A stretch of 64,000 nucleotides of DNA from sequence record NC_061451.1; one strand, 5' to 3'. The translations under genes were made by a program, and so were the position numbers. This document shows, in pieces, positions 12,547 through 34,026 of this stretch (its first letter is position 1; every line of letters starts with the position of its first letter). The notes under the pieces were generated by a model. The model was not told the origin of the DNA, made no database searches, and was given only the letters and a program-made list of their open reading frames with translations.

Positions 12547-13317
12547 ATGAGCAATATCGATACCACAATGCCTGAAGGCAAATGGGAGTTCAACGAGTCG
12601 GTTGCTTGCGTGTTTGATAACATGCTGCAAAACTCCATCCCATCTTATGGCCGTATGCGTGACCTGACGTACCGTCTGGGTCGTCGCTTCGTAACTCCCG
12701 GTTCAGCTATCGTTGATCTCGGTGCTTCACTCGGCCGAGCTATCGAGCCGTTTGCAAAAGAGTTCGGCAAGTATGACTATCATCATGCTGCGGACGCGCC
12801 GGGCGAAGACTACGAAACAGGCAATCACTATAGCCTGTATGAAGTAGCTCCTGCTATGCGCGAACGTCTGGTGCAGAATGAAGTGCTCAACTCAGTGAAT
12901 GCCAAACTGGAAAGTGAATCGCTGGTAGATACTGACACGTTTATGTTCGACGGTCAGGTGCATTGCTCGTTGATTCTGAGTGTGCTAACTCTCCAGTTCA
13001 CGCCGATTGAACATCGTCAACACATTCTGGAGAACGTGTACAACTCGCTGCAACCAGGCGGCGCATTCATCCTCGTTGAGAAGGTGTTAGGTGATAACAA
13101 CTATCTCGACAAAATGCTGGTGGACACCTACTACCAGATGAAGGGCGGTAACGGTTACAGCGCCGAGTCGATTGCGACTAAACGTAAGTCACTGGAAGGC
13201 GTACTCGTTCCTGTTAAAGCAGCATGGAACGAAGAACTGTTGCGTAAAGCAGGCTTCGGTCAGGTAGAAAGTTTCTATCGTGACCTGAACTTCGCAGGAT
13301 GGATTGCTATTAAGTAA
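12547..13317 (+). CDS. cmoA: CmoA-like carboxy-S-adenosylmethionine synthase
   Basis: WEFNESVACVFDNMLQNSIPSY, VDLGASLG, TLQF, PGGAFILVEK, NGYS...KRKSL (Arg199 equivalent at 13183-13185), AGF...F..LNF, collinear with E. coli CmoA as recalled. Confidence 0.9.
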   Translation: MSNIDTTMPEGKWEFNESVACVFDNMLQNSIPSYGRMRDLTYRLGRRFVTPGSAIVDLGASLGRAIEPFAKEFGKYDYHHAADAPGEDYETGNHYSLYEVAPAMRERLVQNEVLNSVNAKLESESLVDTDTFMFDGQVHCSLILSVLTLQFTPIEHRQHILENVYNSLQPGGAFILVEKVLGDNNYLDKMLVDTYYQMKGGNGYSAESIATKRKSLEGVLVPVKAAWNEELLRKAGFGQVESFYRDLNFAGWIAIK

Positions 13318-13326
13318 GGAAATACT

Positions 13327-14589
13327 ATGAAATTAAACGGGCGTATCTTAGCTATCGTCCCACACAAGACAATGCAAGACCGTACCAAGTCGGGTGTGGG
13401 TTCGTACATTGATGGGCTAGAGGCATACGGCTTCTGCGACTTTATCACAGACGGAGAGAACAGCTCCGTTACGAAAAGTCAGTGGTTCACTTATGGTGAC
13501 ACTACTCTCAGTGACGGTTATAAGATAGGGCATATCCAGAGCGAGTTGCTGATTGCACTTGAGCGCCTCCCATACCGTGCGATTATTTGCAGCACGTATG
13601 AGGCGATTGAAGCCTGTGTGTCTCTGGGACTGCCAAAGATTATGCCCGTTTACTATCGCACGCACAACAGCTTTTTGCTCACACAAGATCTCAAGGGTCT
13701 TGGTGCAGAGAAGATCCATCGTGCGTTGTTGCAAGCACGCGTCACAGGGCTGCGCATACTTGCTAACTGTGATTCGACTGCGATCAATCTTACTGAGCGC
13801 TATAAGACGCCAGCACACGTTGCCTACAACTCGTTCTCGGTGCCTGACTACAACCCACCAGCTCGGCGTTCTCCGCAACTGTTGATTATCTGTCGCTATG
13901 AGAAGGTCAAGCGCACGTTGTTTGCTGCGCGTATTGCTGCTGCATCAGGACTACCCGTTCGTGTTATGACAGGCAGTGATCGTCAAGCACGCAATTGGGA
14001 GAAAGAGCTGGCTGAGGCGGGCGTCAAAGAGTATACGGTCGTCAGTGGCCTTAGCGGCAAACAGAAACTCGAATTTATAGGCGCTTGCACCGTAGCCCTT
14101 TCTACTGCGAGCGTTGAATCATTTGCTAATGGTGTGCGTGAGTCTATCCCCTACTGTCCTACCTTTATCGTGCAAACATCCAAGTACGATTGGGCTAAGG
14201 ACTATACGCGCTTCTGTACCGCCGACAAGCATGTTCATATCAGAACTGTTGATCGCGTATCGGACCAAGCCGTAGCTGAAATCGGAAGTGAGATAGCGCA
14301 AACAGCTACCACTCGTTATCTGACAGGACCTCAGCGTAAGCAGCTACTGACTGCTTGGGCAAAGCAAGTTGATCGTGGTTGGTCCGACTTTGTTCAGAAG
14401 GCTGTTGTTGACGATGACGGCAAGCCGCTGCGCACCGAGCTGTATCAAGAACTGATCGACAAGTCAGAGATCGATTGGTCACAGACGCCCACGCTGATGC
14501 GTACTGTAAATGCGTTACATAAATGCCACGCTCGTTTGGGCCTGACATTTGATGGCACTAAAATCAAATATAAGAGGAAGCGCAAATGA
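13327..14589 (+). CDS. GT-B (GT4-like) glycosyltransferase
   Basis: SGVGSY N-terminal loop, CRYEKVKR, E-x7-E motif ESFANGVRE. Confidence 0.75.
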   Translation: MKLNGRILAIVPHKTMQDRTKSGVGSYIDGLEAYGFCDFITDGENSSVTKSQWFTYGDTTLSDGYKIGHIQSELLIALERLPYRAIICSTYEAIEACVSLGLPKIMPVYYRTHNSFLLTQDLKGLGAEKIHRALLQARVTGLRILANCDSTAINLTERYKTPAHVAYNSFSVPDYNPPARRSPQLLIICRYEKVKRTLFAARIAAASGLPVRVMTGSDRQARNWEKELAEAGVKEYTVVSGLSGKQKLEFIGACTVALSTASVESFANGVRESIPYCPTFIVQTSKYDWAKDYTRFCTADKHVHIRTVDRVSDQAVAEIGSEIAQTATTRYLTGPQRKQLLTAWAKQVDRGWSDFVQKAVVDDDGKPLRTELYQELIDKSEIDWSQTPTLMRTVNALHKCHARLGLTFDGTKIKYKRKRK

Positions 14590-15662
14590 GTGTTATCGGT
14601 GATATTTATAACATCCCACAACCGTTCGCAATGTATGTCGGGAATTGTGAGACGCGTGCTCAAGCCAAAGTTGCTGCTGGCACAATCGAGTGGGCGCCAG
14701 AGAAAGTGTGCTGCACCGTAGATGATGGTAACAACCTGTTCCCTAACGTACCTTCAATCAACCCTGCTGACGTGCATAAGACAGATGCAGAAACTTTAGT
14801 GATTGGCTGTGCACCTTTCGGCGGCCGCATTGACGAGCACATGGACAAAGCTATTCGTAGCGCTATCTATCGTGGCCGCAACATCGCTGCTGCTATGCAT
14901 ACGCGCCTGGCGGATAATCCTGAATACGTTGAGCTGGCTGATCGCTACAACGTCAAGCTGTATGACTTCCGCCATCGTCCTGATGCGTACCCACTCGGTA
15001 CTGGTGAGAAGCGTAGCGGTCTGCGTCTGTTAACTGTCGGTACTGATAGCTCATGCGGTAAGAAGTTTACCACGCTGTCTCTGTATCGTGAACTCAAAGC
15101 TATTCATGAAGCCACTACGTTCTGCTCTACTGGCCAGACGGGTTTCTTGATTAGCGGTTGCGGTATCAACAACGACACGATTGTTGCCGACTTCCTTGCT
15201 GGTGCCGCTGAATCACTTTCGCCTGATGGTCCTGCTGATCATGTTTATCTGATTGAGGGTCAAGGCGCTATCACGCACCCAGCATACACAGGCGGCAGTA
15301 TGAGTCTGATTGCTGGCTCGCAGCCTGATCATCTCATCCTGTGTCACGCATGGAACCGTCAGAATCAGTTGGGCGTTAAGCGTAAGCCTGACCTTGATTT
15401 CGAGATGCGTGCTAACATTGAAGCGGCACGTATTCACGGTCTCAACCCGACTTACATCGGTATCAGCATTAACTTCTCTGAGTGCGACCTCACCGCCGAT
15501 GAGCAAGATAAAATCCTGTACCAACTCGCATCAACGTATGAGATTCCCGTGTTCGACCCATCACAGGACACTTCTGTGTTGCGCGATCTCGCTCGTATGT
15601 TAGCAACTAAAGCCAAAGCAAGGAGCCTCGATGGCCAAGCATCAACTGCGCAAGCTGTTTGA
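14586..15662 (+). CDS. DUF1611 family protein (DgcN-like)
   Basis: LVIGCAPFGG, LLTVGTDSSCGKKFT, STGQTG, IEGQGAITHPAY, GSQPDHLILCH. Confidence 0.88.
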   Translation: MSVIGDIYNIPQPFAMYVGNCETRAQAKVAAGTIEWAPEKVCCTVDDGNNLFPNVPSINPADVHKTDAETLVIGCAPFGGRIDEHMDKAIRSAIYRGRNIAAAMHTRLADNPEYVELADRYNVKLYDFRHRPDAYPLGTGEKRSGLRLLTVGTDSSCGKKFTTLSLYRELKAIHEATTFCSTGQTGFLISGCGINNDTIVADFLAGAAESLSPDGPADHVYLIEGQGAITHPAYTGGSMSLIAGSQPDHLILCHAWNRQNQLGVKRKPDLDFEMRANIEAARIHGLNPTYIGISINFSECDLTADEQDKILYQLASTYEIPVFDPSQDTSVLRDLARMLATKAKARSLDGQASTAQAV

Positions 15663-16506
15663 ACAGCATGTGAAAAAAGAAGTGAAAGCAGACAAGGTAG
15701 CTGTGCTGCTTTCATCTGGCCTCGATGGTTTGGTCAGTGCGTTAGCTGCACACGACCTGGGCAAGAAGGTACATGCCTTCACATTCCAAATGGGTGACAA
15801 CCCTAGCTTTGACAGTCGCCACGCACAGGTCGTTGCACAGAAGATGGGATGGGAGTTCACTCTCGTTAAAGTTCCCACCAGCGTGTCTGCTATCGCGTTA
15901 GCGTGGCGCGTGCTACACTCCAAGTATCGCTGCATCAAGAAGCGTGACTATGAATGTGCGTACCCTATGGTCTATTGCTACAAGGCAATCAAAGACGCTG
16001 GGTATAAGTATGTGTTAAGCGGGCTGGTGGCCGATGGCTACTTCCTGTATAACCGTAACACGCACATTCAGAAAATCAGCGGCCCGCACTCTGACGCTCA
16101 GAAGTATCATGAGTTCCGTACTCAATACTTTAGTCCGTGGCTTAAACACGGTAAGAAGTCTCTGGGCGTTGACGGGTACAACCCGAGCGGTATGTTGCAG
16201 CATGAAATGTTGTGCGATAACTTCGGCCTGATTCACGTTAACCCGTGGATGCAGAACAAGGTGTTTGACTACTTCATCAAATACACTTGGCAGGAGCTGA
16301 ATCAGCCTAAGCAGAAGATGCCACTAACCGAAGCGTGGGCAGAACACATTGCTCTTGTTGGTCATCGCCCACACAGGGGCTATCAGACAGAAGCCAAAGT
16401 GCCTGAATACTTTGAGCATCTGATCGATAACCCTGAGATTAACTTTAACGGGCGCAAGCGCATCATGGACGTGGCACGCGACTGGTCCAAACGAGAGCCT
16501 GAATAA
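15631..16506 (+). CDS. AsnB-synthetase-domain ATP-dependent amide ligase lacking a glutaminase domain (CmoY-like)
   Basis: PP-loop LLSSGLDG, VLSGLVADGYF (AsnB VLSGEGADE), P..K..L; only 291 aa. Confidence 0.75.
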   Translation: MAKHQLRKLFEQHVKKEVKADKVAVLLSSGLDGLVSALAAHDLGKKVHAFTFQMGDNPSFDSRHAQVVAQKMGWEFTLVKVPTSVSAIALAWRVLHSKYRCIKKRDYECAYPMVYCYKAIKDAGYKYVLSGLVADGYFLYNRNTHIQKISGPHSDAQKYHEFRTQYFSPWLKHGKKSLGVDGYNPSGMLQHEMLCDNFGLIHVNPWMQNKVFDYFIKYTWQELNQPKQKMPLTEAWAEHIALVGHRPHRGYQTEAKVPEYFEHLIDNPEINFNGRKRIMDVARDWSKREPE

Positions 16507-16761
16507 ATGCATCCTGTTATCACAGACTTTCTTGGTCCTATCGTTAAGCGGCTGGGCTTATTCACTGCTATATTCGGTTTTGTCGGCGTGCTGCTGTCTG
16601 TGATCGCAGTGCTTGTGTGCCGCCCAGAAGTCCTTCAATACGAATACGATACTGTAAATAGACTTCGTACTGAGGGTATTGTATTCTTGGGTAAAGGCGT
16701 TCTTGTTTACATCGTAGGCGAGATACTTGAAGGCACGTTCAAGTGGAGAAAAGATGATTAA
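16507..16761 (+). CDS. small membrane protein
   Basis: Two hydrophobic segments. Confidence 0.6.
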   Translation: MHPVITDFLGPIVKRLGLFTAIFGFVGVLLSVIAVLVCRPEVLQYEYDTVNRLRTEGIVFLGKGVLVYIVGEILEGTFKWRKDD

Positions 16762-17017
16762 CAAATTCGTGATGAAGAAGACTCCATCCATTGAAGCCTG
16801 TCAGTGGAACGGAGAGAACAAGGAAGAGATTGAAGCCTTCCTTGGCAATAACGGATTCGTTGTTGGGCGTTACGTGCAGATTGGTGTTCTGGATAAATAT
16901 CAGAAGCCAACCATTGCTAACGTAAGCGTGGGCAACTATGTGATCAAGCGTGATGATGGTAAGTTCTATGCCATTACTGCGCAAGATCTGTTTGAGAATT
17001 ATGTATTAGCAGATTGA
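16754..17017 (+). CDS. conserved phage hypothetical protein
   Basis: IEACQWNGEN...VGNYVIKRDDGKFY...F...Y pattern typical of a common small phage family. Confidence 0.7.
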   Translation: MINKFVMKKTPSIEACQWNGENKEEIEAFLGNNGFVVGRYVQIGVLDKYQKPTIANVSVGNYVIKRDDGKFYAITAQDLFENYVLAD

Positions 17018-17024
17018 GGCCATA

Positions 17025-17477
17025 ATGAATCTGTTTTCTATTTTAAAACAGCAAGTGAAGAAATCCCTGACGACCGAAGCAACACTTGAACCAGAAGTGC
17101 GCAAACACTTTGACTGGCGTTTCAGTGTTGACGTCAAGGGCATGATGTACATTGTAGGCAAGACGGGCGCTAACACCTGCTTCTATCTTGAGCCAGGTCA
17201 CGTTGAGCCTACTGCCTGCTACCCTGATGAACTTCTTGCGAAGATCGATAGCTGGGGCGCTGCGAAGTATGTGTCCTACGCTGTCTATTTCAAGAAGTTC
17301 ACCAGTCCTGTAGCTGAAAACATCAAGACGCTTGAGCAAGCCAAGACAGGCAAGCCTAAAGCGTTTAAGAAAGGCTACTTTATCTGTGGCGTAACACCGA
17401 AAGGTAAGCGCGTCAAACTGTGTCGTCTACACAACAGCCTGAGCGGTATGCAGTGGGTTGATGTAGACCAGAAGTAA
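17025..17477 (+). CDS. hypothetical protein
   Basis: GAGG RBS, 150 aa. Confidence 0.7.
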   Translation: MNLFSILKQQVKKSLTTEATLEPEVRKHFDWRFSVDVKGMMYIVGKTGANTCFYLEPGHVEPTACYPDELLAKIDSWGAAKYVSYAVYFKKFTSPVAENIKTLEQAKTGKPKAFKKGYFICGVTPKGKRVKLCRLHNSLSGMQWVDVDQK

Positions 17478-17491
17478 AACAAGGAGCTTAT

Positions 17492-17812
17492 ATGATTAGC
17501 GACATTGACATTGGCCATTATTATAGTTCTGCGAGCGGTATACCGTTTCGCGTAAAAGAACGTGCAGCACACGGACAAGATTGTTCTCTGTCGATGATCG
17601 TATTTGAGAACGTGGAGGCAACTAAGGATTACCCTGTTGGTCAAACTTGGGTGCTTCCAGAATCTCTGTTCGTGAAACAGTATTCCGAATTTACGGAAGG
17701 AAAGTATCATGAACGAAACAACGCTCTTAGAGCATCTGAAAACAAGACACTGGCAACCAGAGAAGCATTTCGGGTGGCTTTCGCCGAAGACCCTGACAGT
17801 GCCACTGTATAG
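17492..17812 (+). CDS. DUF1653-like SH3-fold protein
   Basis: IGHYY...FRV...AAHGQDCSLSMIVF...WVLP..LF. Confidence 0.55.
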   Translation: MISDIDIGHYYSSASGIPFRVKERAAHGQDCSLSMIVFENVEATKDYPVGQTWVLPESLFVKQYSEFTEGKYHERNNALRASENKTLATREAFRVAFAEDPDSATV

Positions 17813-18225
17813 CTTTGACCGACAGATGAGAGGCGTTCAAGTCTATACGCCTAGCGCACCGAAGAAAGACCCGAACCCCAAAGCGTGTCGTTACTTCACT
17901 CGCGTGTTCGGTGGCAAACAGTTGGTGTGGGGAACGGAAATTAGACCTATACGGGCCGACCGTTTTCTTAACTGAGTCTGTGTTCAAAGCGTGTGCGCTA
18001 CATCGTCTCGGTCTCAATTCGTGGTCTGTTTTAGGCTCGAACGTGAGTGACTATTTATACCACCAGCTTAGTCTTCTTGACCTGCGTTTTGTTTGTCTAG
18101 GTGATGCGGATAAAGCTGGTGAGGAGTTCAGTCAGACGTTTGGTCGTGGTGCTGTTAGTGCCGACTTGGACGAGATGACTGATGAGCAGTTACTCGATTT
18201 AACTCTACCACTATTAAGGAAATAG
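17709..18225 (+). pseudogene. Toprim-domain primase-like gene split by a +1 frameshift near 17940
   Basis: Frame A ends QLVWGTE; frame B continues LDLYGPTVFLTESVFKA...GDADKAG (Toprim E and DxD) and has no good start of its own. Confidence 0.7.
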
Positions 18226-18226
18226 G

Positions 18227-18655
18227 ATGGAACATAAAGTTGTCGTGCGTATTCTCGGACCTGTTGGCAGCGGTAAGTCTTCTGTTTACGCCAAGCTCGT
18301 TAAAGGTCTGACTGATACTGGCGCTATCATCAAACACGCAGATGAGCAAGCGTGGAATATGCTGAATAACAGCGGTGAGGTAACTTCGGCCGACACGGTT
18401 CTCGATGAGTTTCGCACCGAAGTTACCTTCGAAGAAGTTGTGATTCGTGACGACTACACCAAGTCTAAGAATCAGATCATGCAGTTCTTCGCGTACTCGC
18501 ATCTGCCGCCTAACTTGCAAGCGATCAGTAAACCGATTGCGTTGCTCGCTCAGGAGATGGACCAGAATCTGCCTGATGGTGCTGAGAAAGCCGCTGGTCT
18601 GCGTAAGCTGCTTGAAGCGAAAGACTGTCTGGTTCGTGCGCTGGTAGCCAAGTAA
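18227..18655 (+). CDS. P-loop fragment fused to an Acb2/Tad1-like helical hairpin
   Basis: GPVGSGKS; C-terminal FFAYSHLPPNLQ..SKP...EKAAGLRKLLEAKDCLVRA. Confidence 0.6.
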   Translation: MEHKVVVRILGPVGSGKSSVYAKLVKGLTDTGAIIKHADEQAWNMLNNSGEVTSADTVLDEFRTEVTFEEVVIRDDYTKSKNQIMQFFAYSHLPPNLQAISKPIALLAQEMDQNLPDGAEKAAGLRKLLEAKDCLVRALVAK

Positions 18656-18669
18656 CTCGGAGAGCAAAC

Positions 18670-19059
18670 ATGCCTAATTTTATTCGCCCTCCTTCATTAC
18701 TCAAGTCAGTGCCTACGTCGTCAACTGTAGAAGCAACTGACATTTTCGCATCACTCGCACCTATCAACAACGTAATTAACCTAAGTGCCGCTCAAGCTCT
18801 GCGCCGTGAGCAAATCGGTGCTGGTCATGTTGAGCAGTTCTCTGAGGCTATTGGTCTGCATCCAGAAGACCCTGCTCCTGAAAATGATCTTGTCAGCGTT
18901 CCAGCGATCACTTTCTCATTTGAAGGAGATGCATGTGAGACCTGGTATTTCTGCGGACCTGAACGTACTCTAGCTGAATGGTCTGTAGTGCGTGATGCCG
19001 TTGAACAATCTTTTGTTGATAATTCATACCATCATGATATGAACTTCGAAATCAACTAA
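18670..19059 (+). CDS. hypothetical protein
   Basis: GGAGA RBS, 129 aa. Confidence 0.7.
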   Translation: MPNFIRPPSLLKSVPTSSTVEATDIFASLAPINNVINLSAAQALRREQIGAGHVEQFSEAIGLHPEDPAPENDLVSVPAITFSFEGDACETWYFCGPERTLAEWSVVRDAVEQSFVDNSYHHDMNFEIN

Positions 19060-19065
19060 CAACAC

Positions 19066-19091
19066 AAAGGGTGGCTTCGGCTGCCCTTTTT
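19066..19091 (+). terminator. intrinsic terminator
   Basis: AAAGGGTGGC-TTCG-GCTGCCCTTTTT. Confidence 0.85.
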
Positions 19092-19095
19092 CGAT

Positions 19096-19103
19096 CTGTA
19101 AAT
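19096..19103 (+). promoter_or_regulatory. candidate phage promoter CTGTAAAT (one of at least 13 copies)
   Basis: Intergenic, directly after the terminator and 31 nt before an ATG. Confidence 0.6.
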
Positions 19104-19133
19104 AACTCGTATAACATCTAACGAGAAGCTACC

Positions 19134-19535
19134 ATGAGACCTGAAAACATTTCACGCACCTATCGCGTCGGTCAGTCTGACCTGGAGAAAGCACACAACG
19201 TCTGCGGAGAGAACAATGTAACACTCTCAGATGTGGTACGCAGATACATCGAAAGAATCGTACTGACTGAGGGTGAGTTCCTTATGAGCGAGCGTAAGCA
19301 CGTACCTGAGTCTCAACTGAATGTACGCCTGCCCTTTTACATTGCGCACTCCTTTGCATCTGTGTGTAAGTCTCGTGGTACGTTAGCCTCTAAAACCATT
19401 CTCAACTTTGTCAGGAATATTGCTCTTTCAGGTACTATCCCTGAGGAGTTAAAGTACGCCTCAGACACAGAGTTGCGTGCCTATATTACCTCCGAGCGCT
19501 CTCGCCTCGATGCACTGGAAGCAAAACTTAAATGA
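19134..19535 (+). CDS. tandem ribbon-helix-helix DNA-binding protein
   Basis: RTYRV...TLSDVVRRYIE and QLNVRLP...ASKTILNFVR. Confidence 0.6.
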   Translation: MRPENISRTYRVGQSDLEKAHNVCGENNVTLSDVVRRYIERIVLTEGEFLMSERKHVPESQLNVRLPFYIAHSFASVCKSRGTLASKTILNFVRNIALSGTIPEELKYASDTELRAYITSERSRLDALEAKLK

Positions 19536-20371
19536 TTCTAACTAGCCCCATTCGCTATCAGGGCAACAAGCGCACTCTGATGCCTCTTATTCTTGAACAT
19601 GCGCCTGTGAAGGATTGCGTTCGCATGATAGACGCATTCGGCGGTAGCGGTACTGTTGCGCTCAACATGCCTCACAAGTTTCGCATCTACAATGAATTGA
19701 GCACGCCTGTGTTTGAGATCGTCCAGTTGCTTGCGCATCAAGATCCGAAGAAAACGTTGGGTCAGATCAAGCGTATCGTCAAGCGTTTTTGTCTAACCAA
19801 TAGCAGCCAAGACAACTACGACATGTTCCGCGCGTATGTGCAGAAGAAGCCTAGCCCTCTTCACCATTACATCGCACACAGGCATGCACGCTCTAACATG
19901 CTGCGCTTCAACCAGAAAGGCATCTACAACGTGCCGTTCGGCGAGCGGGGCCTGATTGGCAAGTTCGATCAGCTCGAACAGGAGCTGGTGCAGTTCCACG
20001 AGCGTATGCAGAACACGCACATCACCAACATGCGCTACAACATGTTGCTCAAGTCTGTGTCAAAGCATATCGGACCTAACACGTTCATTTACTTTGACCC
20101 TCCGTATCTTGCTAGCGGTGCGATGCAATACGGTAAGTGGACTGAGCACAACGAACGCAACCTGCTGTCCGTACTTGAGTATCTGAATCGTCAAGGCTGC
20201 CCGTGGATGTTGAGCAACGTTCTCCAACATCGGCATCACACGAACGACCTGCTCAAACGCTGGCTAAAGAAACACGCAACGACTGTCATCTATCCTGACA
20301 AGTCTTATTCAATGGCCAACTCTCATTCCGATAGTCACAGCACTATCGAGATCCTGGCAATGAACTACTGA
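19532..20371 (+). CDS. dam: DNA adenine methyltransferase (Dam/D12 class)
   Basis: SPIRYQGNK, DAFGGSG, YFDPPY, WMLSN. Confidence 0.92.
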   Translation: MILTSPIRYQGNKRTLMPLILEHAPVKDCVRMIDAFGGSGTVALNMPHKFRIYNELSTPVFEIVQLLAHQDPKKTLGQIKRIVKRFCLTNSSQDNYDMFRAYVQKKPSPLHHYIAHRHARSNMLRFNQKGIYNVPFGERGLIGKFDQLEQELVQFHERMQNTHITNMRYNMLLKSVSKHIGPNTFIYFDPPYLASGAMQYGKWTEHNERNLLSVLEYLNRQGCPWMLSNVLQHRHHTNDLLKRWLKKHATTVIYPDKSYSMANSHSDSHSTIEILAMNY

Positions 20372-20378
20372 GGTGCAT

Positions 20379-20843: not shown

Positions 20844-20844
20844 A

Positions 20845-22937: not shown

Positions 22938-22939
22938 TT

Positions 22940-23284: not shown

Positions 23285-23669
23285 TCAGTTACGTGATCAA
23301 TTGACCGAAGCTGAATACGCAGAACTTGAGCGCACTACAGCGCGGTCGATCATGGAACAAGTGTGGGCACTACGCGGCTGGACGGTAAAGCTCGACTGGT
23401 GCAACTATATGTGCGACGACGTTGATTGGTTATTCCATGGTAATGAGCGTAAAGCACCAGTTGATCACGCTATGCCGAATTCTGGTGTTGGCACTAGCAT
23501 TGAGCAGCATCGCCTTAATGTCGTGTTTACTCCTACTGAGGTTAGCGTTACGAACTCACTGGTAGACAGCCCTGTCACGGGCACTGGTATGTCACTGCGC
23601 TGTGCTTACTGCGCGTGGCTTTTAGAAATCGAAAAACAAAAGGCTGCCAATGCGCTGCAATCTGACTGA
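23271..23669 (+). CDS. hypothetical protein (NinX/DUF2591-like?)
   Basis: P....GTSIEQHRLNV...G.SLR.A pattern. Confidence 0.55.
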   Translation: MSSVNQLRDQLTEAEYAELERTTARSIMEQVWALRGWTVKLDWCNYMCDDVDWLFHGNERKAPVDHAMPNSGVGTSIEQHRLNVVFTPTEVSVTNSLVDSPVTGTGMSLRCAYCAWLLEIEKQKAANALQSD

Positions 23670-24165
23670 ACTGCCTATCAAACTCGATCAGGCTGAAAAC
23701 ATTATGGGCAGCGTGTTCGCGCTTGCTGCTGGCTCCAAGTCCAAACGCCGTGCTACTGCGGCAATGCTCATTCACTTCCATGAAGGCTACCCTACCATTA
23801 TCAGTAGTGGCGTCAATGGTACTGTGCCCGGTGAGAGCAACGTGTGTGAGAATGAAGACCTCACTCTGACGTTTGCGCACGTCACCCACGCAGAAGCTAA
23901 CTGCCTCAATCGCATGGACGAATACAGTCTGTGGCCAGAAGAAGAGGACATCCTGTTTTGTACTGACAGCCCATGTCCTGATTGTTTGCAGCAACTCGAA
24001 TCTGCTGGTGTGCAGACCATCATTTATGCGCGTGAATACAGACTCACAGAGCACCTGGATAAGTCTGCTATTCGCATGTATTGTCTCGATATTGAGAACG
24101 TGCGGGCGTCTTTGCTGAAATCTGTAAATCGTATAGACGAAGTGATTGCAACCATACCTACTTAA
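23650..24165 (+). CDS. dCMP deaminase
   Basis: SGVNG.PG, HAEAN, SPCPDC Zn motifs. Confidence 0.9.
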   Translation: MRCNLTELPIKLDQAENIMGSVFALAAGSKSKRRATAAMLIHFHEGYPTIISSGVNGTVPGESNVCENEDLTLTFAHVTHAEANCLNRMDEYSLWPEEEDILFCTDSPCPDCLQQLESAGVQTIIYAREYRLTEHLDKSAIRMYCLDIENVRASLLKSVNRIDEVIATIPT

Positions 24166-27142: not shown

Positions 27143-27470
27143 CGTTTTCAAATACGTGATGTTCTTGCTGGTCAAAGACGAGCGCACGAACAAAGATCGC
27201 ACGCATATCCCTATAATCTTCCCACGTCATATCATGCACAGTGATATGGGCGATGAGATGCGCGGCTATGCGATACATAACGGTTACGTGGAGAATCGTT
27301 ACCACCAGACAATGGAACCTGTTAGCGCAGGCTTTGTTGATCTCAACACACTGTCGTGCTTTGGTGAGTCTGAGTCTATGGAACTCAAGTCTCGTCCAGA
27401 AGAAGACAGCCTAATCCTTCGTGAGTATTTCAAAGATGATGGAAAACTTCCTGAAGTACCTGTGGAGTGA
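27114..27470 (+). CDS. hypothetical protein
   Basis: PIIFP...HS.M...PVSAGFV...CFGESESM.LKSRPEED phage-type pattern. Confidence 0.65.
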   Translation: MSNNQKLPPNVFKYVMFLLVKDERTNKDRTHIPIIFPRHIMHSDMGDEMRGYAIHNGYVENRYHQTMEPVSAGFVDLNTLSCFGESESMELKSRPEEDSLILREYFKDDGKLPEVPVE

Positions 27471-27774
27471 TGAGTTCTGGTCCTCTCCTGCTTCTGCGTT
27501 CGCACCCACTGTTGTAATCATCTCATGGTTTGTGTTCTGTGAGATTCGTGAACGCCGTGCGTTACGTGCAGCACAGCGCGTTGTAGCAAGTGGCTGGGAG
27601 CCTGTTGAACACGCCACGTATCAACACAAATGGCTGCCGTGGGTGAAGTGCTATGTCATGTTCTATACTGTCAGTCTGAACGATAAGTTCATGCCTGCTG
27701 TGTACGTGCTAAGAGGCAAGCATAGCTCTGAAATCCCCATGCACAAATTCCATTCTCGTTGGAGTTTAGTATGA
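27436..27774 (+). CDS. hypothetical membrane protein
   Basis: One TM segment. Confidence 0.55.
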   Translation: MMENFLKYLWSDEFWSSPASAFAPTVVIISWFVFCEIRERRALRAAQRVVASGWEPVEHATYQHKWLPWVKCYVMFYTVSLNDKFMPAVYVLRGKHSSEIPMHKFHSRWSLV

Positions 27775-28088
27775 CACCCCTTATTATGTTTGACGCACGA
27801 ACCATTCGCGTACTCAAGCAAAGTTTCGGTCAGGACAAACCTTTCGTTGTTGCTGGGCTGAACCCAATCGTTGGCAACAAAGGTGATCGTGTTACTCTCG
27901 CTAATGCCTGTAGCGTAGTCGCCATCCCTCGTGTGATGGGACTTGAAGTAGGTCAAGTGCTTTACGTAGGAACGGATGATGAAGTCTACGCATGGCCTTC
28001 TGATATGGTGATGGAATTTGCTTCTGTCTCTGATAACCAAACTCGGACCATTGCTTATGCATTGCGTCCAATACTCTCGGATGATTAA
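27771..28088 (+). CDS. hypothetical protein
   Basis: GGAG RBS. Confidence 0.6.
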   Translation: MTPLIMFDARTIRVLKQSFGQDKPFVVAGLNPIVGNKGDRVTLANACSVVAIPRVMGLEVGQVLYVGTDDEVYAWPSDMVMEFASVSDNQTRTIAYALRPILSDD

Positions 28089-28090
28089 AA

Positions 28091-29191
28091 ATGACAGGTC
28101 CTCTCGATCTCACTAACCCACAGCACTTCGAACTGTACTCGCTGCACAGCGTTGATGCACAGTATATCAATCTGTGTGACGCACTCCTCACTCAGGGTAC
28201 GCACGAATCTGACCCAGAGCGCACTACTGATACGTGGCATACGCTGATCGGTATTGGCTTCCAGTTGTCTAACACCAACATCGCTTTCCCTGCGCTGCTG
28301 TCTAAGCGTGTCAACGTCCGTGCAGCTATCGATGAATCATGCTGGTTCGCACGCGGTGAAACGAACATCGCAACTCTCGGTTCTAAAATCTGGAACGAGT
28401 GGGCAGACGAAGAAGGTGAGAACGGTCCTATCTACGGCTTCCAGTATCGCAACTGGCCTGACATTAAAGTGTTCAATACTGTCGAAGGTATGATTGAGCA
28501 GCACATCCCACCAGCAATGATTGAGCGCATCTCGAAAGAGATCAACCGCATGAAGGCGCAGGGCTATATCGAAACTGCGTTGCCTGATGGTCGCGTGCTG
28601 TATGAAGGCTATATCGATCAGTACGCTGATGCACTACGTCAAATCATGGCGCGTAGTCGTAGCCGCCGCATTCGTGTGCAAGCGTTCAACCCTGGTTACG
28701 TTGGTATGCAGAGCCTGCCTCCGTGTCACACTGAGTTTGAGTTCAACGTGACCAAAGCTACTGCGTATGAAATTGCGCAGATGGAAGCACGCTCAATGCG
28801 TCCTGACGCCGACTCACTGCATATCGTGGTGACGATGCGCAGCAATGATGCACTTCTCGGGCGCCCCTTCAACATCGTTGGCTACAGCGCCATGCACCAG
28901 TTGTTTGCGAAGTGGGCGGGTCTGAACGTTGGTTCGTTTACTCTGAATGTGACCAATATGCACATGTACGATCACCACCGCGAAGCGTATGCACAACAGC
29001 GTGAGCAGTGGCTGGAACTACAGACGCAGATGCAGACGACAGGCAAACCTGTTGTTTACCCTACCCTCGAAATCACTGACGACATTCTGGGCCTGACGCC
29101 AGAAGAGCTGCTGGATAACGTCAACGTCGATTGGTTCGAGCTGGTGGACTACTCTCCTAAACCTGCTGTTAAAGGACGCGTAACCAAATGA
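28091..29191 (+). CDS. thyA: thymidylate synthase
   Basis: IWNEWAD, GPIYGFQYRNW, SRR, LPPCH, RSND..LG.PFN, HMY. Confidence 0.93.
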   Translation: MTGPLDLTNPQHFELYSLHSVDAQYINLCDALLTQGTHESDPERTTDTWHTLIGIGFQLSNTNIAFPALLSKRVNVRAAIDESCWFARGETNIATLGSKIWNEWADEEGENGPIYGFQYRNWPDIKVFNTVEGMIEQHIPPAMIERISKEINRMKAQGYIETALPDGRVLYEGYIDQYADALRQIMARSRSRRIRVQAFNPGYVGMQSLPPCHTEFEFNVTKATAYEIAQMEARSMRPDADSLHIVVTMRSNDALLGRPFNIVGYSAMHQLFAKWAGLNVGSFTLNVTNMHMYDHHREAYAQQREQWLELQTQMQTTGKPVVYPTLEITDDILGLTPEELLDNVNVDWFELVDYSPKPAVKGRVTK

Positions 29192-29850
29192 TGCTAATCA
29201 GCCGCATTGCTGCATTCCTGTATGTTGGGTATGCAGAGTCAGTGGAAGATATTCCACGTTTGCTCGTCGAAAAAGTTAAGGTGCGCATCGAAGATCCCGA
29301 TTGGGACCCGTTTGATGACGTTACCGTTGAAGATGCACCGCCTATTCTCGAAATGACAGGCAAGGTCATCTATCATCTGCCGCTCAACTGCTTCCTGATT
29401 GACGGTCGCATGGAGCAGGACGAATCGTCCGAAGATACTCTCAAGATGCAGAAGTATTGTCAGACCAACTTCTTCAAGCACAAGCAGACGCGTAATGGCC
29501 GTGTAGGCATTGCCGTGGACAGCATGATCAGAGAACTGTCTTATGCAGAGGCACAGCACCCTAACTGGCCTACTGAGCCTCTGCACGCTGGTGCTATCCT
29601 TGCAGAAGAAGCTGGTGAGTGTCTGCGTGATTGCGTGTCATACGATGAAACAGGGCGTGAAGATCTGCTTGCATCTATGGCAGAAGAAGCGGTGCAGACA
29701 GGCGCTATGGCGATTCGTTTTCTGATCAATGCGCATCGCTCTAAAGAGCGCACGCTGCCTCGCTCTACAGTCCGTGACCTGCTGTCAGACACATCCATTC
29801 CTCTGGCTGAGCGTGTTGCTAAACTTCTTGATGTGGTGGACGCTAAATGA
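29188..29850 (+). CDS. protein with C-terminal MazG-like NTP pyrophosphohydrolase domain
   Basis: ILAEEAGE...EEAVQTGAMAIRFL. Confidence 0.6.
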   Translation: MMLISRIAAFLYVGYAESVEDIPRLLVEKVKVRIEDPDWDPFDDVTVEDAPPILEMTGKVIYHLPLNCFLIDGRMEQDESSEDTLKMQKYCQTNFFKHKQTRNGRVGIAVDSMIRELSYAEAQHPNWPTEPLHAGAILAEEAGECLRDCVSYDETGREDLLASMAEEAVQTGAMAIRFLINAHRSKERTLPRSTVRDLLSDTSIPLAERVAKLLDVVDAK

Positions 29851-30758
29851 AACTACTTGCACTTATTCCAGCTGCTACCACCAATGTTTTCCGCACGCTG
29901 CATTGTGTAGGCACGGCAGAAGAGTTCCCTGTAGGCGAGCATCCTAAGTGGTCTGGCTTTGGTTTGAATATGACTAACGTCAAAATCATTCCTGACCTGG
30001 CTAAAGACGCCGTGCCTGATTCGTTCTACGTCACTATCGATAGCCACCTCGACTGGTCTGTTGATCTTGATCGTATCGATACATTCAGCGCTGATTATCT
30101 CATCTGGTGCGGTAAGCATACGCCTTCAATTGAAGCTGTGCTCGAAGCCCACATGATTAAAGGCCAGCTGCCGAATCTGGTGCAGGACTTCGATGCTTTT
30201 GTCGCTGATCTGCAAGAGCGTCTGGACAACATGACCAGCCTAGCCAAAGATCGTATGACCATCTCAGGCAGCACGCTGATCGATAGCGACACCACAGCCA
30301 AGTATAACCTGTGGGCTATCTATCGTCACTGTCTAATGTTGGACAACAAGATGGTCCTGCTGTACGGTAAAGACAATCACATCCATGTGTCCGACACGCA
30401 CGTATCTGAAAAGGGTATCGGCTGGTGGTTGACCGAGCACAACAAACACATGATGAGCATTGCACAGCAAAACGATCTGCTGGCCGCTTACATTACGTTT
30501 GAGCGCGATAGCTCTGGCTATACGTTTGTTGGTGCTGACGGTACTCAGGTTAAACGTCCTGTCGAGAGCAGCGAGTTCATGCACATGGCGCATCACGGCC
30601 TGTTCCCTAAAGTGGTAGTGCGTGAAGACGCAGACGGCCGTAACTTTGAACTGTCGTTTGATTACGCCGAATACTTCCCGCAAGCGTATCACGATTTCGT
30701 CAATCATGCGTGGGCCGGCCGTTCTGATCGTTCACGCGATTTGGTTCGCTTCGTCTGA
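29847..30758 (+). CDS. hypothetical protein
   Basis: 303 aa ATGA-coupled ORF. Confidence 0.7.
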   Translation: MKLLALIPAATTNVFRTLHCVGTAEEFPVGEHPKWSGFGLNMTNVKIIPDLAKDAVPDSFYVTIDSHLDWSVDLDRIDTFSADYLIWCGKHTPSIEAVLEAHMIKGQLPNLVQDFDAFVADLQERLDNMTSLAKDRMTISGSTLIDSDTTAKYNLWAIYRHCLMLDNKMVLLYGKDNHIHVSDTHVSEKGIGWWLTEHNKHMMSIAQQNDLLAAYITFERDSSGYTFVGADGTQVKRPVESSEFMHMAHHGLFPKVVVREDADGRNFELSFDYAEYFPQAYHDFVNHAWAGRSDRSRDLVRFV

Positions 30759-30809
30759 TCGTTGCGCTGTCTGCTGTCAGTAATTTGAAGCTACTATAGG
30801 AGACAGCGC

Positions 30810-31148
30810 ATGAAATATGATAAGACCAAAGACTACCAACCGTTCAAGTATCTTGAGCCGGACCCAAAGGCTCCAAGAGTAGGCTTCTACGGTTCGACTG
30901 GCCACACTGTCACAAAGGACGTTCTGATAGGGCAGGACGTATGCGAGTTTGAGTTCAAGCCTGAAGAGTTGAACAATATGAATCGCGGTACGCTGCTCTT
31001 CCGTGCTAAAGATAGTGGCGGAACTATTGTCGTAAAGAAATGCTCTGTGCTTGGATTGAAAATGGTAATTACGCTAGAGAGAAGGGTGATTCAGTTCGGC
31101 AAGGTTCAAGCTGAATGGATGACCACATCCCGACTGTATAACTACTAA
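30810..31148 (+). CDS. hypothetical protein
   Basis: AGGAG RBS. Confidence 0.65.
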   Translation: MKYDKTKDYQPFKYLEPDPKAPRVGFYGSTGHTVTKDVLIGQDVCEFEFKPEELNNMNRGTLLFRAKDSGGTIVVKKCSVLGLKMVITLERRVIQFGKVQAEWMTTSRLYNY

Positions 31149-31190
31149 CTGTAAATACATTGTACAGAAGCAACTACAAGAGAAAAGAGA

Positions 31191-31889
31191 ATGGCAAAAA
31201 TTGCTAAAGCAAAGGAAGGGAAAAAGAAAAGCAACCCTATGTTGATTGACCTGAAAAAGTTCAAGTCAGTTAAACAGCTTAAGGGTGCGAAGTACAACCC
31301 TCGTTTCATTACAGACAGCCGACTGAGAGCGCTCGAAGGTTCTTTGGGCAGCTTCGGTGATTTGTCTGGCGTGGTGTTCAACAACAGCGTAGACAGTGGC
31401 GTATTGATCTCAGGCCACCAGCGTCTCAAGTCGATTGAGAAGTGGGACTCGCGCATTGAGATTCAACAAACGTCTGACAAGTACGGCACGGTAGCGTTGG
31501 GTTATATCCATGCTACCAGCGCCAAAGGTAAAACGATCAGCATCCCACTGCGTATCGTTAACTGGTCAGATAAGAAAGTGGAGTTTGCTGCTAACATTGC
31601 TGCGAATGCCCACGGCGGTGAGTTCGATAACAAAAAGCTCGCGTCTCTTGTTGAGAAGCTGGACCTGACTACAATCAAGCCAGCTCTTATCGGGCTTGAC
31701 CCGTTAGAGATTCGCGGCCTGCAACAGACGCTGAGCAAACAAGCTATCGTCGAGCAGGAAAAGCGTGTTGGTAAAACAACAGGCAAAATGAACGGCAGTA
31801 CTGGCGAGTTCAAAGAGTACACGACTGATGAAGTTGGTACTGCGCTGACCTGCACCTGCCCACGTTGTGGCTTTAAGTTCGAGGGATAA
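31191..31889 (+). CDS. ParB/Srx-like domain protein with C-terminal Zn ribbon
   Basis: KYNPR, SFGDLSGVVFN, LISGHQRLK; CTCPRCGFKF. Confidence 0.8.
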   Translation: MAKIAKAKEGKKKSNPMLIDLKKFKSVKQLKGAKYNPRFITDSRLRALEGSLGSFGDLSGVVFNNSVDSGVLISGHQRLKSIEKWDSRIEIQQTSDKYGTVALGYIHATSAKGKTISIPLRIVNWSDKKVEFAANIAANAHGGEFDNKKLASLVEKLDLTTIKPALIGLDPLEIRGLQQTLSKQAIVEQEKRVGKTTGKMNGSTGEFKEYTTDEVGTALTCTCPRCGFKFEG

Positions 31890-31890
31890 C

Positions 31891-34026
31891 ATGATCATCA
31901 AGCCGCCTACAATGAAAGAGATTAATAAGCTGCCCAAGCCTTGGTCAGGTATGAGTTTCTTTGCAGGTTGCGGTGGTTCATCTACCGGTCACAAGATGGC
32001 CGGTATTAACATCCTACTGAGCAACGAGTTCGTGGACGCGGCTCGTGAATCGTATGAAGCGAACCATCCAACAACCAAAGTGTTGCCCCACGATATTCGT
32101 CGTCTTGACCCGAAAAAGCTGCTTAGCTATTGCGGCCTGAGTCAGGGCGAACTGGACTTGCTCGACGGCAGTCCTCCGTGCTTCACCGAAGACACGTTCA
32201 TTCATACCGACACTGGTATGAAGTTCATCACTGATATGCGCATCGGTGACTTCGCTATGACCTCTGTTGGTAAGTATCATCCAGTGTATGACACGATGGT
32301 ACGTCCGTATGACGGTCAGATGCACAGAATTGAAACGCTGCTTGGTCAGAACAATGCAACGCCTGAACATCCGTTCTTTGTTCGTCGTCAGAATGAAGAA
32401 ACTGGCGGGTACAGTGAGCCGTTCTGGTGTGACGCTAAAGATGTGCAGGAAGGTGACCTGTTAGGTACGCCTCGTGTTACGCCTGATATGGGCGAAGCAC
32501 ACACGCATGAGATTATCTCGTCGTTGACTGCGCAGCTTGTGCGTTGGATTGCATTGCCTGAGTTCTGGTGGCTGATTGGTCACTGGTGCAATCGCGGTGC
32601 AATCGATAAGATTCGTGGTGTCGATGTTATTCAATTCACCTCGATGACAGCGATGGAAAACTCGCTGGTGGAACAAGCGTTCGACGTGCTCAAGTTAAGC
32701 AGCATCAACAGCGCTTCGTCCGACATGGGCGTTCATCGTAAGACCGTTCGTGTTGTTATGGACACAGACCTGTTGCTGTTCTTGCGTATGTTTATCGCGC
32801 AGGGCAAGAAGTCTATGTCCCGCCGTCTGCCTGGCATGATCTTCCATCTGGCTAAAGAGCTGAAACAGCAATTCATTCTCGGCTATCTGGGTCGTGATTA
32901 CGTCACAGCAATGGGCGTTGGTCATGCGTTAGAGGCTGACTCAAAGCGCTTCCTAGTTGAGATGAATTACCTGTGCTGCTCTGCGTTCAACAGACCGCTG
33001 TTCGATGCAATGTTGTTCACTGACTTGCATTACGGTAGTCCGATGTTACCACCGAGTCGCTTCATTACCAAAGAGCACATCGGCTTCCTGTTCTTGCAAG
33101 AAGAGGTTAATTTCTTCTTTGAGTTCGAGCCGGAAGACCCGCATCTGTGGGTTGAAGTGATTGAGAACTTTACGCATCATGAAACGTGCAACGTCTATAA
33201 CTTCTCAGTCAGTGTTGATGAGACGTATGTTGCTAACGGCATGGTCGTGCATAACTGCAAAGGGTTCTCGACTGCTGGCGTGAAAGAAGACGGCTGGGGC
33301 AAAGAGGTTAAGTACAGCGGCAACAAGTATCAGCAAGTCGATGACCTGTTCGATCAGTATTGCCGTATGCTCAAGCACATGCAGCCTAAAACGTTCACTG
33401 CGGAAAACGTTAGTGGCCTCGTTAAAGGTGCGTCGAAGGGTTACTTCATTGAAATCATGAAGACCTTTGATCAGCTGGGCTACTATGTGCGAGCGCCGTT
33501 GCTTAATGCTGCGTGGCTTGGTGTGCCTCAGTCTCGTGAGCGTATCATCTTTATGGGTGTGCGCAAAGACGTGGCGAAAGCACTCGGCTATAAAACTGCG
33601 TTGACTGCTGTGCCTGATGTAACACCTCAATCAAGCATGGCGTTCCTTGCAGATGCATTGCCGAACATTCGTCGCTATAAAGGTACGGAGCGTGACATTA
33701 TCAAGTATCTGCCTGCTGTTAACGGCCCGATGCCTACGATTACCGCTGCTGATGCTATCGCATACGAAACAGCACGCTTCTCCTCTGCTGGCTTCATTGA
33801 AGACGACAAAGGGCACAGACGCAAGCTGACGATTGACGAACTCAAAGTTGTGTCAGGCATGCCTAGTGATTACGTGCTCACAGGTAAGTTTGAAGAACAA
33901 TGGGAACGTCTCGGTCGTGTGTGCGTACCTGCAATGACGTGTGCTGCGGCAAGCGCGTTGATACGCCATGTGCTTGAGCCTTACGCGAAGCTGCGTAAAA
34001 AGAAACCTGGGGATCGTTTTCGTTAA
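31891..34026 (+). CDS. DNA cytosine-C5 transferase (Dcm fold), predicted carboxymethyltransferase (CmoX-like), intein-containing
   Basis: Motif I FFAGCGG, IV GSPP|CKGFS, VI ENVSGL, VIII PQSRERI; motif X reads LGRVCVP instead of GN(S/A)V. Confidence 0.88.
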   Translation: MIIKPPTMKEINKLPKPWSGMSFFAGCGGSSTGHKMAGINILLSNEFVDAARESYEANHPTTKVLPHDIRRLDPKKLLSYCGLSQGELDLLDGSPPCFTEDTFIHTDTGMKFITDMRIGDFAMTSVGKYHPVYDTMVRPYDGQMHRIETLLGQNNATPEHPFFVRRQNEETGGYSEPFWCDAKDVQEGDLLGTPRVTPDMGEAHTHEIISSLTAQLVRWIALPEFWWLIGHWCNRGAIDKIRGVDVIQFTSMTAMENSLVEQAFDVLKLSSINSASSDMGVHRKTVRVVMDTDLLLFLRMFIAQGKKSMSRRLPGMIFHLAKELKQQFILGYLGRDYVTAMGVGHALEADSKRFLVEMNYLCCSAFNRPLFDAMLFTDLHYGSPMLPPSRFITKEHIGFLFLQEEVNFFFEFEPEDPHLWVEVIENFTHHETCNVYNFSVSVDETYVANGMVVHNCKGFSTAGVKEDGWGKEVKYSGNKYQQVDDLFDQYCRMLKHMQPKTFTAENVSGLVKGASKGYFIEIMKTFDQLGYYVRAPLLNAAWLGVPQSRERIIFMGVRKDVAKALGYKTALTAVPDVTPQSSMAFLADALPNIRRYKGTERDIIKYLPAVNGPMPTITAADAIAYETARFSSAGFIEDDKGHRRKLTIDELKVVSGMPSDYVLTGKFEEQWERLGRVCVPAMTCAAASALIRHVLEPYAKLRKKKPGDRFR
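32179..33255 (+). mobile_element. intein (359 aa) with degenerate LAGLIDADG endonuclease
   Basis: Starts CFTEDT, block B ATPEHPF, ends YVANGMVVHN; +1 residue is the catalytic Cys. Confidence 0.92.

Follow-up and report, generated by a model that had tools for sequence, protein, structure and literature searches.

A candidate 5-carboxymethylcytosine hypermodification system, with an added glycosyltransferase and DgcN-like protein, in Erwinia phage pEa_SNUABM_7

The closest described counterpart of the system considered here is that of Synechococcus phage S-B43, where CmoA, CmoX and CmoY yield 5-carboxymethylcytosine (5cxmC) and, from it, 5-glycylcarboxymethylcytosine (Yang et al., Nat Commun 2025, December 2025, PMC12783734). 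The survey in that work counts 5,615 CmoX, 4,257 CmoA, 2,251 ligase and 1,660 ParBc proteins, and presents 5cxmC as a natural base of wide distribution. Glycine, in one cyanophage, is the only proven appendage of 5cxmC, with further amides and the supply of prephenate being posed as questions, and there is no mention of Erwinia phages, of an associated glycosyltransferase, or of acetyltransferases, racemases or inteins (PMC12783734). The subject here is a set of genes in Erwinia phage pEa_SNUABM_7, a jumbo phage of the genus Snuvirus (265,635 bp) that infects Erwinia amylovora. The stretch analyzed, ‘the window’, is 64,000 nucleotides long and identical to bases 1-64000 of the genome (NC_061451.1 / MZ475896.1). 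A reading made earlier from the letters of this DNA had proposed a two-locus 5cxmC system in which the carboxyl serves as a handle, and its account of the S-B43 CmoA/CmoX/CmoY system agrees with PMC12783734. The core system is thus already published; an extension by glycosyltransferase (GT) and DgcN-like genes, a polymorphism of cassettes among sister phages, and an intein are absent from that publication.

The features discussed are all on the + strand, as part of a long co-directional gene array:

12547..13317, + strand: gp017, CmoA-like carboxy-SAM synthase (256 amino acids (aa); matches in PDB, TIGR00740 and PHROG)
13327..14589, + strand: gp018, glycosyltransferase candidate, GT-B fold and GT4-like (420 aa; AlphaFold2/Foldseek fold, EX7E motif)
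14586..15662, + strand: gp019, P-loop N-acyltransferase-like protein of the DUF1611/DgcN family (358 aa; both DUF1611 domains)
15631..16506, + strand: gp020, CmoY-like ATP-dependent PP-loop amide ligase (291 aa, no glutaminase domain)
31191..31889, + strand: gp051, ParB-like, directly upstream of gp052 (PHROG 620, E 2e-31; also PHROG 498)
31891..34026, + strand: gp052, predicted precursor of a CmoX-type DNA cytosine C5-carboxymethyltransferase (711 aa; alternative GTG start at 31867)
32179..33255, + strand: class-1 intein in gp052 (359 aa; Pfam Intein_splicing, E 1.8e-8, and Hint_2)

In RefSeq, gp017 is named ‘tRNA methyltransferase’ and gp051 ‘ParB-like partition protein’, the other genes under discussion being hypothetical. 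Each of the five genes in the earlier proposal is where it had been placed; the intein in gp052, the adjacent ParB-like gp051 and the existence of a characterized DUF1611 member, DgcN, were missing from it. All three S-B43 enzyme types are represented, with a CmoX that carries SPPC, ENV, QxRxR and the arginine for the carboxylate of carboxy-S-adenosylmethionine (Cx-SAM, or carboxy-SAM), a glutaminase-less PP-loop ligase of asparagine synthase type, no CmoB, and a ParB-like neighbor as in many CmoX contigs. There are also differences. Identities to the S-B43 proteins are low (CmoA 28%, CmoX 36%, CmoY 33%), the genes are in two loci about 15 kb apart, the CmoX is interrupted by an intein at its catalytic cysteine and has a shorter target-recognition region that cannot be aligned, and GT4-like and DgcN-like genes lie between CmoA and the ligase.

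The closest solved structure to gp052 is 8YF3, the CmoX of S-B43 (SpCmoX), with E 1.7e-54, the next being HaeIII at 1e-16, which puts the methyltransferases some 38 orders of magnitude or more behind 8YF3. Arginine 676 of the 711-aa precursor aligns both with R350 of SpCmoX and with the asparagine of the HaeIII ‘IGN’ (the ‘GN’ of motif X), and the motif-X Asn-to-Arg change noticed earlier in this C5-cytosine transferase about 15 kb downstream of the first locus is therewith placed at the R350 position. R350 contacts the Cx-SAM carboxylate, the published criteria for CmoX are SPPC plus an R350 equivalent, and wild-type SpCmoX accepted Cx-SAM only (PMC12783734). Both SPPC and the R350 equivalent are present in gp052, whose motifs are FxGxGG, GSPPC, ENV, QSRER and, replacing GN, LGR; all four aligned CmoX sequences have LGR, IGR or VGR at motif X. 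On removal of the intein a protein of 352 aa is predicted, which aligns end to end with SpCmoX (36% identity) and with the CmoX proteins of two metagenomic phage contigs, L021 (48%) and L011 (50%), all motifs being intact. (Handles beginning with L denote contigs and sister genomes used for comparison.) The target motif may nevertheless differ from the GC specificity of SpCmoX, judging from the recognition region.

The intein is between ...LLDGSPP and CKGFSTAG..., directly before the catalytic cysteine of motif IV, with the cysteine of SPPC being the +1 residue of the C-extein. Its removal restores GSPPC, the same as in L011, L021 and SpCmoX. The residues for splicing are intact (Cys1 in CFTEDTF, TPEH in block B, and C-terminal VVHN before the cysteine), though the Pfam Intein_splicing score, 34.8 bits, is marginally under the 35.8 cut-off. 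Its boundaries are established by intein-less alleles: L011 reads GSPPC followed by SAFSNAG at the empty site, and L021 reads GSPPCKGFSTAGV, the same as the predicted spliced pEa_SNUABM_7 junction. In L009, a near-identical sister of L011, this site is occupied by an intein of 402 aa that has 19% identity to that of gp052. Throughout the clade of pEa_SNUABM_7 the intein is present, gene matches covering 96-100% and the Yersinia homolog being 692 aa, and in a Pfam scan its central part had no match to a homing-endonuclease family. While assignment of gp052 as a transferase stands, it needs the correction that what is encoded is a precursor, predicted to require protein splicing before activity since the catalytic cysteine is otherwise separated from the rest of motif IV.

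With gp017, strong matches are confined to CmoA models and structures. Among solved structures only CmoA is found (4GEK, 1IM8 and 4IWN, E 4e-28 to 2e-25, with 4GEK at 4e-28), and PHROG 4752 is matched over the full length (E 3e-78). The scores are, however, under the curated cut-offs: 136.4 bits (E 1e-39) for TIGR00740 CmoA against an equivalog cut-off of 193.3, and 102.6 bits for NF011995 against 285. Identity to the verified S-B43 CmoA (SpCmoA) is 28% (E 3e-25), SpCmoA being equally divergent. An ungapped alignment to 4GEK places K212-R213 of gp017 opposite E. coli K198-R199 (chain residues 212-213, with a 14-residue tag offset). The lysine 198 equivalent is invariant across the CmoA alignment (A2), whereas column 199 has arginine in E. 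coli and gp017, glutamate in SpCmoA, and lysine in L010 and L021. Either Arg199 is a weaker diagnostic of CmoA than assumed or the alignment is locally shifted. The description of gp017 as CmoA-like with a retained Arg199 equivalent accordingly holds, and use of that arginine as a strict CmoA marker does not, since a verified CmoA has glutamate there.

Whether a tRNA-directed partner is encoded is also pertinent. With E. coli CmoB as query, no match was found within the window, as had been noted earlier. The same query against 50,697 phage records gave one match, in a 3.4-kb Salmonella fragment and in no true phage record; the fragment, which also has cmoA, is probably host DNA. Absence of CmoB from the window and from true phage records means that there is no tRNA acceptor enzyme. 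A user of Cx-SAM without CmoB, which is the combination taken as a criterion for CmoA, is what was found, CmoX being in the same genome.

The ligase candidate, gp020, has a Pfam Asn_synthase match over positions 1-132 (E 1.8e-13) and covers only the synthetase half of AsnB, TIGR01536 model positions 234-394. The glutaminase-less AsnB-type ligase of the sequence-only reading is thereby confirmed and can be specified as a clear CmoY homolog: the pairwise match to S-B43 CmoY (SpCmoY) is 33% identity over 275 aa (E 1e-50), with a PP-loop of SSGLDG where SpCmoY has SGGVDS. Beyond the jumbo phages of Erwinia, Dickeya and Yersinia, its matches in the phage database are to ligases of the S-B43 group of cyanophages and, weakly, to a Staphylococcus phage (E 3e-7). 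That it is strictly paired with a DgcN-like gene points to an amine other than glycine. Adjacent to the transferase, gp051 had no Pfam match; homologs with 43% identity are directly upstream of CmoX in L009, L011 and L021, and an association of ParBc with CmoX had already been noted for CmoX contigs (PMC12783734).

In gp019, both Pfam DUF1611_N (E 5.5e-18) and DUF1611 (E 2.2e-46) are above threshold, so that its earlier designation as a DUF1611 protein applies to N and C domains alike. It matches PDB 7XRJ over residues 10-326 (E 4e-53), with a conserved GTDxxxGKxxT loop, and NCBIfam NF041892, ‘N-acetyltransferase DgcN’, with E 2e-86 and 289.8 bits, under the 480-bit equivalog cut-off. DUF1611 is no longer of unknown function: DgcN has its NCBIfam name and, in two reports, is described as the key enzyme in irreversibly converting D-glutamate and other, related acidic D-amino acids into their L-forms (PMC12363236, PMC10845958). 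As for gp019, it would be a diverged DgcN paralog, belonging to the family but perhaps acting on other substrates.

For gp018, identification depends on structure prediction. Its own sequence had no match in Pfam, NCBIfam or PHROG scans, and only seven homologs were found in 5.8 billion proteins, three of which fall just below the Glycos_transf_1 threshold (PF00534; the best, P0007, 26.0 versus 26.4 bits). An AlphaFold2 model built from the homolog alignment (pLDDT 82.7, pTM 0.82) gave Foldseek matches to SenB, GlgM, BshA, MshA, SdgB, TarM and the GT of phage HY126 (E 2e-10 to 1e-8), with probability 1.00 for SenB, GlgM, BshA, MshA and TarM and TMq up to 0.59. Against viral models it matched group-1 GTs, with a cyanophage ‘DNA alpha-GT’ among them. 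The EX7E hallmark of GT4 is at E264-E272, invariant in the seven homologs. The GT4 label given previously to gp018 is thus upheld by fold and by motif and not by the family scans, where no Pfam hit was obtained. A role for this GT on 5-hydroxymethylcytosine (5hmC) or 5-hydroxymethyluracil made by the ThyA-like gp047 was rejected as a primary reading, as gp047 scores as a thymidylate synthase and is unlinked to the GT in any relative. In its own right, gp047 (28091-29191, hypothetical in RefSeq) has 366 aa and is homologous to thymidylate synthase, with insertions that add about 100 residues relative to bacterial ThyA. Its TIGR03284 score is above the cut-off, and both the catalytic PPCH and the asparagine of PFN that specifies deoxyuridine monophosphate are retained.

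Genes of the first locus are closely spaced (9, -4, -32 and 0 nt for successive junctions from gp017 to gp021). Around the two loci, scans for sigma-70 promoters and terminators did not outperform shuffled sequence and gave no operon boundaries. As these scans are uninformative, ‘operon’, the word used earlier for the first locus, fits the spacing and is otherwise a presumption.

More telling for whether the genes act together is their distribution. In the Erwinia and Dickeya part of the phage collection, CmoA is in 50 records and the CmoX C-extein in 50. The paper on phage AD1 notes that CmoA, asparagine synthase, a C5 methyltransferase and a ParB-like ‘repressor’ are common to AD1 and Y3 and jointly absent from the related JA11. 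(The same paper has a radical SAM protein, AD1_267/Y3_272, that is likewise in AD1 and Y3 and not in JA11; it is outside the window, and it may belong to the system or have nothing to do with it.) The two-locus layout recurs in Yersinia phage fHe-Yen9-02, where genes for Dam, dCMP deaminase and ThyA separate the loci. In distant phage contigs the five gene types plus ParB are contiguous, in the order ParB-CmoX-CmoA-GT-DgcN-racemase-CmoY in L021 and ParB-CmoX(intein)-GT-DgcN-CmoY-CmoA in L009/L010. CmoA is next to CmoX in L021, L010 and phage PaBG. Co-occurrence in relatives, which the sequence-only reading had named as a check, is thus borne out by the 50/50 records, the joint loss in JA11 and the contiguity in distant contigs. 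The two pEa_SNUABM_7 loci belong together, the single operon in distant metagenomic phages being the most telling evidence.

Other arrangements extend this. L006 has CmoA-84aa-GT-DgcN-racemase-CmoY-DAHP synthase, L018 and L019 have GT-DgcN-CmoY-small ORF (open reading frame)-GNAT, and L020 has DgcN-racemase-CmoY. The GT-DgcN-ligase synteny is present in five diverged lineages with GT identity to gp018 of 25-47%, which makes it old and not explicable by recent common descent. In the phage collection the DgcN-like gene is in 34 records, all of this clade, and the type-1 ligase (at least 80% identity to gp020) in 34. GT-profile scans of IMG/VR and JGI metagenomes added the same Erwinia phages, one 268-kb uncultivated viral genome (UViG) and one JGI contig, the informative distant contexts having been obtained by exact-protein look-ups. 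Two of these contexts have additional enzymes. In L018 (10557-11465) and L019 (10192-11100) a 302-aa GNAT acetyltransferase follows GT-DgcN-CmoY, and no CmoA or CmoX was found within the 18-19 kb fetched. In L006 (14162-15025) an aroFGH-type 3-deoxy-D-arabino-heptulosonate 7-phosphate (DAHP) synthase ends the operon (TIGR00034, 180 bits versus a cut-off of 173); the match begins near model position 47, the N-terminal segment being missing. It could raise shikimate flux and so supply prephenate for Cx-SAM synthesis.

Among the sister phages, the region after cmoA (about 12-17 kb in L003, L004, L005 and L015-L017) is a swap hot spot, with at least four tailoring cassettes on one CmoA/CmoX chassis. 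Y3 has CmoA, a type-2 ligase (23-29% identity to gp020) and a 2-oxoglutarate (2OG)-Fe(II) oxygenase, the type-2 ligase being with or without the 2OG oxygenase within the hot spot. AD1 and Alexandra have CmoA-DgcN-ligase, the SNUABM_7 group has CmoA-GT-DgcN-ligase, and the type of SNUABM_3, _1 and _17, along with one IMG/VR UViG, has CmoA-GT-DgcN-racemase-like-ligase. The pEa_SNUABM_7 gp019 is nearer to the AD1 type (74-76% identity) than to the SNUABM_3 type (57%), while gp018 has 79% identity to the SNUABM_3 GT, so that the SNUABM_7 cassette looks mosaic.

The best explanation of the whole, and one that we regard as probable, is that cytosines are converted post-replicatively to an amide derivative of 5cxmC by a pathway homologous to that of S-B43, with elaboration by gp018 and gp019. 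The carboxyl as a handle is supported at the level of homology, signature residues and gene context. In the proposed course, gp017 would form carboxy-SAM from SAM and host prephenate. The intein would first leave gp052, joining the cysteine of SPPC to the rest of motif IV, and spliced gp052 would then place a carboxymethyl group on C5 of cytosine, with Arg676 holding the cofactor carboxylate at the place where ordinary methyltransferases have asparagine. ParB-like gp051 probably aids engagement of the transferase with DNA. The new carboxyl would be adenylated by gp020 and coupled to an amine. Being translationally coupled between gp017 and gp020, gp018 and gp019 may elaborate that amine or, alternatively, the completed side chain. 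N-acylation or handling specific to D-amino acids would be the part of gp019 and addition of a sugar that of gp018, and the outcome would be a base heavier than the known glycine amide. The steps ascribed to gp017, gp052 and gp020 are argued for by strong homology to verified proteins, by signature residues and by context, and the tailoring step is suggested by conserved synteny and family membership. By analogy, the modification would likely protect phage DNA from host nucleases.

That the GT and DUF1611 genes signify a more elaborated base, as first surmised, gains from the conserved synteny in five diverged lineages, though the elaboration itself is something that we infer. A plausible product is an amide with a D-amino or diamino acid, acylated on its remaining amine and with a glycosylated side-chain hydroxyl. 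This is on account of DgcN chemistry N-acylating a D-amino acid (and a 5cxmC-D-amino-acid amide is itself an N-acyl-D-amino acid), of racemase-like genes accompanying the DgcN-like gene in several lineages, and of several of the nearest GT folds using small hydroxyl acceptors or serine. That the cytosine adduct is specifically such an unseen compound, a 5cxmC amide with a (D-)amino acid or diamino compound, N-acylated and O-glycosylated so that amide and sugar are on one base, is put forward tentatively, as possible though rather doubtful.

Several considerations weigh against the proposed pathway. In literature searches, no paper on modified DNA in Y3, AD1, Alexandra or the SNUABM phages came up. 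Three of the five proteins (gp017, gp018 and gp019) are all under curated equivalog or gathering cut-offs, and the target-recognition region of gp052 (residues about 570-640; 33800-33950) is shorter than that of SpCmoX and not alignable with it. The chemistry of gp018 and gp019 is not self-evident: an alpha-amino acid coupled through its amine would have no free amine for DgcN-type N-acetylation, and no obvious hydroxyl is defined for the GT. Many sister phages have CmoA, CmoX and ligase without the GT or the DgcN-like protein, and both are thus dispensable for the core. The last of these also speaks for a simpler version, unlikely in our estimation, where modification stops, as in S-B43, at 5cxmC and a simple amide and where gp018 and gp019 act elsewhere, on a host envelope component, on a protein of the phage or on free D-amino acids. 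GT4-type enzymes do act mostly on small molecules, lipids and proteins, and the known substrate of DgcN is free D-glutamate. Such a separation of function accords poorly with retention of the GT-DgcN-ligase order in five lineages despite GT identities of 25-47%, with the GT-DgcN pair being always flanked by CmoA or CmoX on one side and the ligase on the other, with phage DgcN-like genes occurring only alongside the type-1 ligase (34 records each), and with the overlaps of 4 and 32 nt among gp018, gp019 and gp020. A further step away from DNA, and highly improbable, would be a small-molecule pathway in which the GT4-like protein, ligase and N-acetyltransferase build a low-molecular-weight glycoconjugate by the logic of mycothiol or bacillithiol, leaving the DNA undecorated. 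MshA and BshA are among the closest folds to gp018, and a GT, ligase and acetyltransferase trio mirrors MshA, MshC and MshD. Against this, gp020 is a CmoY homolog and not a cysteine ligase, no deacetylase is present, and in L021 and L009/L010 the module forms one cluster with CmoX/ParB and CmoA.

The core itself can also be doubted. If gp017 were to feed the cmo5U modification of host tRNA, or to drain SAM, and gp052 were an ordinary 5-methylcytosine methyltransferase, there would be no DNA carboxymethylation at all. The RefSeq name of gp017 and its score under the CmoA equivalog cut-off are in keeping with this, as are a CmoB of the host's own and SAM depletion having been raised as a possible side role (PMC12783734). 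It is very hard to credit, however, given an arginine in gp052 where methyltransferases have asparagine, the exclusive acceptance of Cx-SAM by wild-type SpCmoX, the margin of about 38 orders of magnitude for 8YF3 over any methyltransferase, the lack of a phage CmoB, and the adjoining of CmoA and CmoX in L021, L010 and PaBG; a CmoA for tRNA modification was rejected on these grounds. Decay is the remaining concern, the intein or another part being defective, the genes relics and the virions unmodified. Absence of a homing-endonuclease match in the central intein suggests decay of that part, and the Intein_splicing score is slightly short of its cut-off (34.8 versus 35.8). Yet all splicing residues and all ORFs are intact, the C-extein protein is 100% identical within the SNUABM_7 group (gp052 DNA 97.6-100%), and phages of Erwinia, Dickeya and Yersinia share the layout, all of which leaves a decayed system with very little probability. 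Conversion to a 5cxmC amide with further elaboration is accordingly the reading preferred.

Known systems other than that of S-B43 offer partial parallels. To the DgcN-DgcA pathway for D-glutamate, the likeness is of gp019 having DUF1611 N and C domains in full length with a conserved P-loop, and of sister cassettes in which the DgcN-like gene is beside a racemase, echoing a DgcN-plus-racemase theme. The partner in those cassettes is, however, an alanine-racemase-fold protein and not DgcA, and none is in pEa_SNUABM_7; the score is 290 rather than 480 bits, and the context is DNA modification rather than catabolism. With T4-type alpha-GT and the GT of phage HY126, whose DNA holds arabinosylated 5-hydroxycytosine (5hoC; GT structure 9IQZ, PMC13326640), the shared features are a GT-B fold and a phage gene within a base-modification cluster. 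Foldseek TM values are 0.56 (9IQZ) and 0.48 (S-TIM5 DNA alpha-GT), with sequence identity of only 13-15%. In contrast to GTs acting on 5hmC or 5hoC, the pEa_SNUABM_7 cassette is without an enzyme to form either, and the acceptor would be on the side chain of the 5cxmC amide. The thymidine hypermodification cassettes that derive from 5-hydroxymethyldeoxyuridine (PMC5889632, PMC8989533) similarly have a conserved core providing a handle plus tailoring enzymes swappable between related phages. There the hydroxymethyl comes from the nucleotide level and is kinase-activated, whereas the pEa_SNUABM_7 handle is a cytosine carboxyl put on DNA by a methyltransferase homolog and no 5-HMUDK-like kinase was seen.

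From a practical perspective, cultured phages that are close relatives and infect a non-cyanobacterial host, having one CmoA/CmoX core and at least four tailoring cassettes (ligase; DgcN and ligase; GT, DgcN and ligase; GT, DgcN, racemase and ligase), offer a route to the question of further amides. The DAHP synthase in the L006 operon suggests phage boosting of the shikimate pathway for Cx-SAM, and, with an intein at its catalytic cysteine, the transferase would be a natural example of an enzyme dependent on splicing. New adducts in DNA are relevant to phage resistance against restriction and other nucleases, and as a source of enzyme tools for DNA functionalization. Should the N-acylated, O-glycosylated 5cxmC amide prove real, the Erwinia/Dickeya clade would amount to a combinatorial series of at least four 5cxmC-derived bases, and gp019 would be the first DUF1611 member in nucleic-acid modification.

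Some neighboring genes also deserve comment. A Dam-family N6-adenine methyltransferase, gp029 (19532-20371), scores 114.1 bits for TIGR00571 against a cut-off of 114.85, and judging from it N6-methyladenine is probably also present in the phage DNA. A dCMP deaminase (23650-24165) is within the same gene array. The RefSeq ‘DNA ligase’ is a 72-aa ORF at 5351-5569 and the ‘DNA primase’ an 81-aa ORF at 17980-18225, names which, given these sizes, are probably over-annotation from PHROG labels. The large terminase (2477-5311) is unusually long at 944 aa, with an end-to-end match to its PHROG family, and inteins in terminases of related jumbo phages are mentioned in the PaBG paper.

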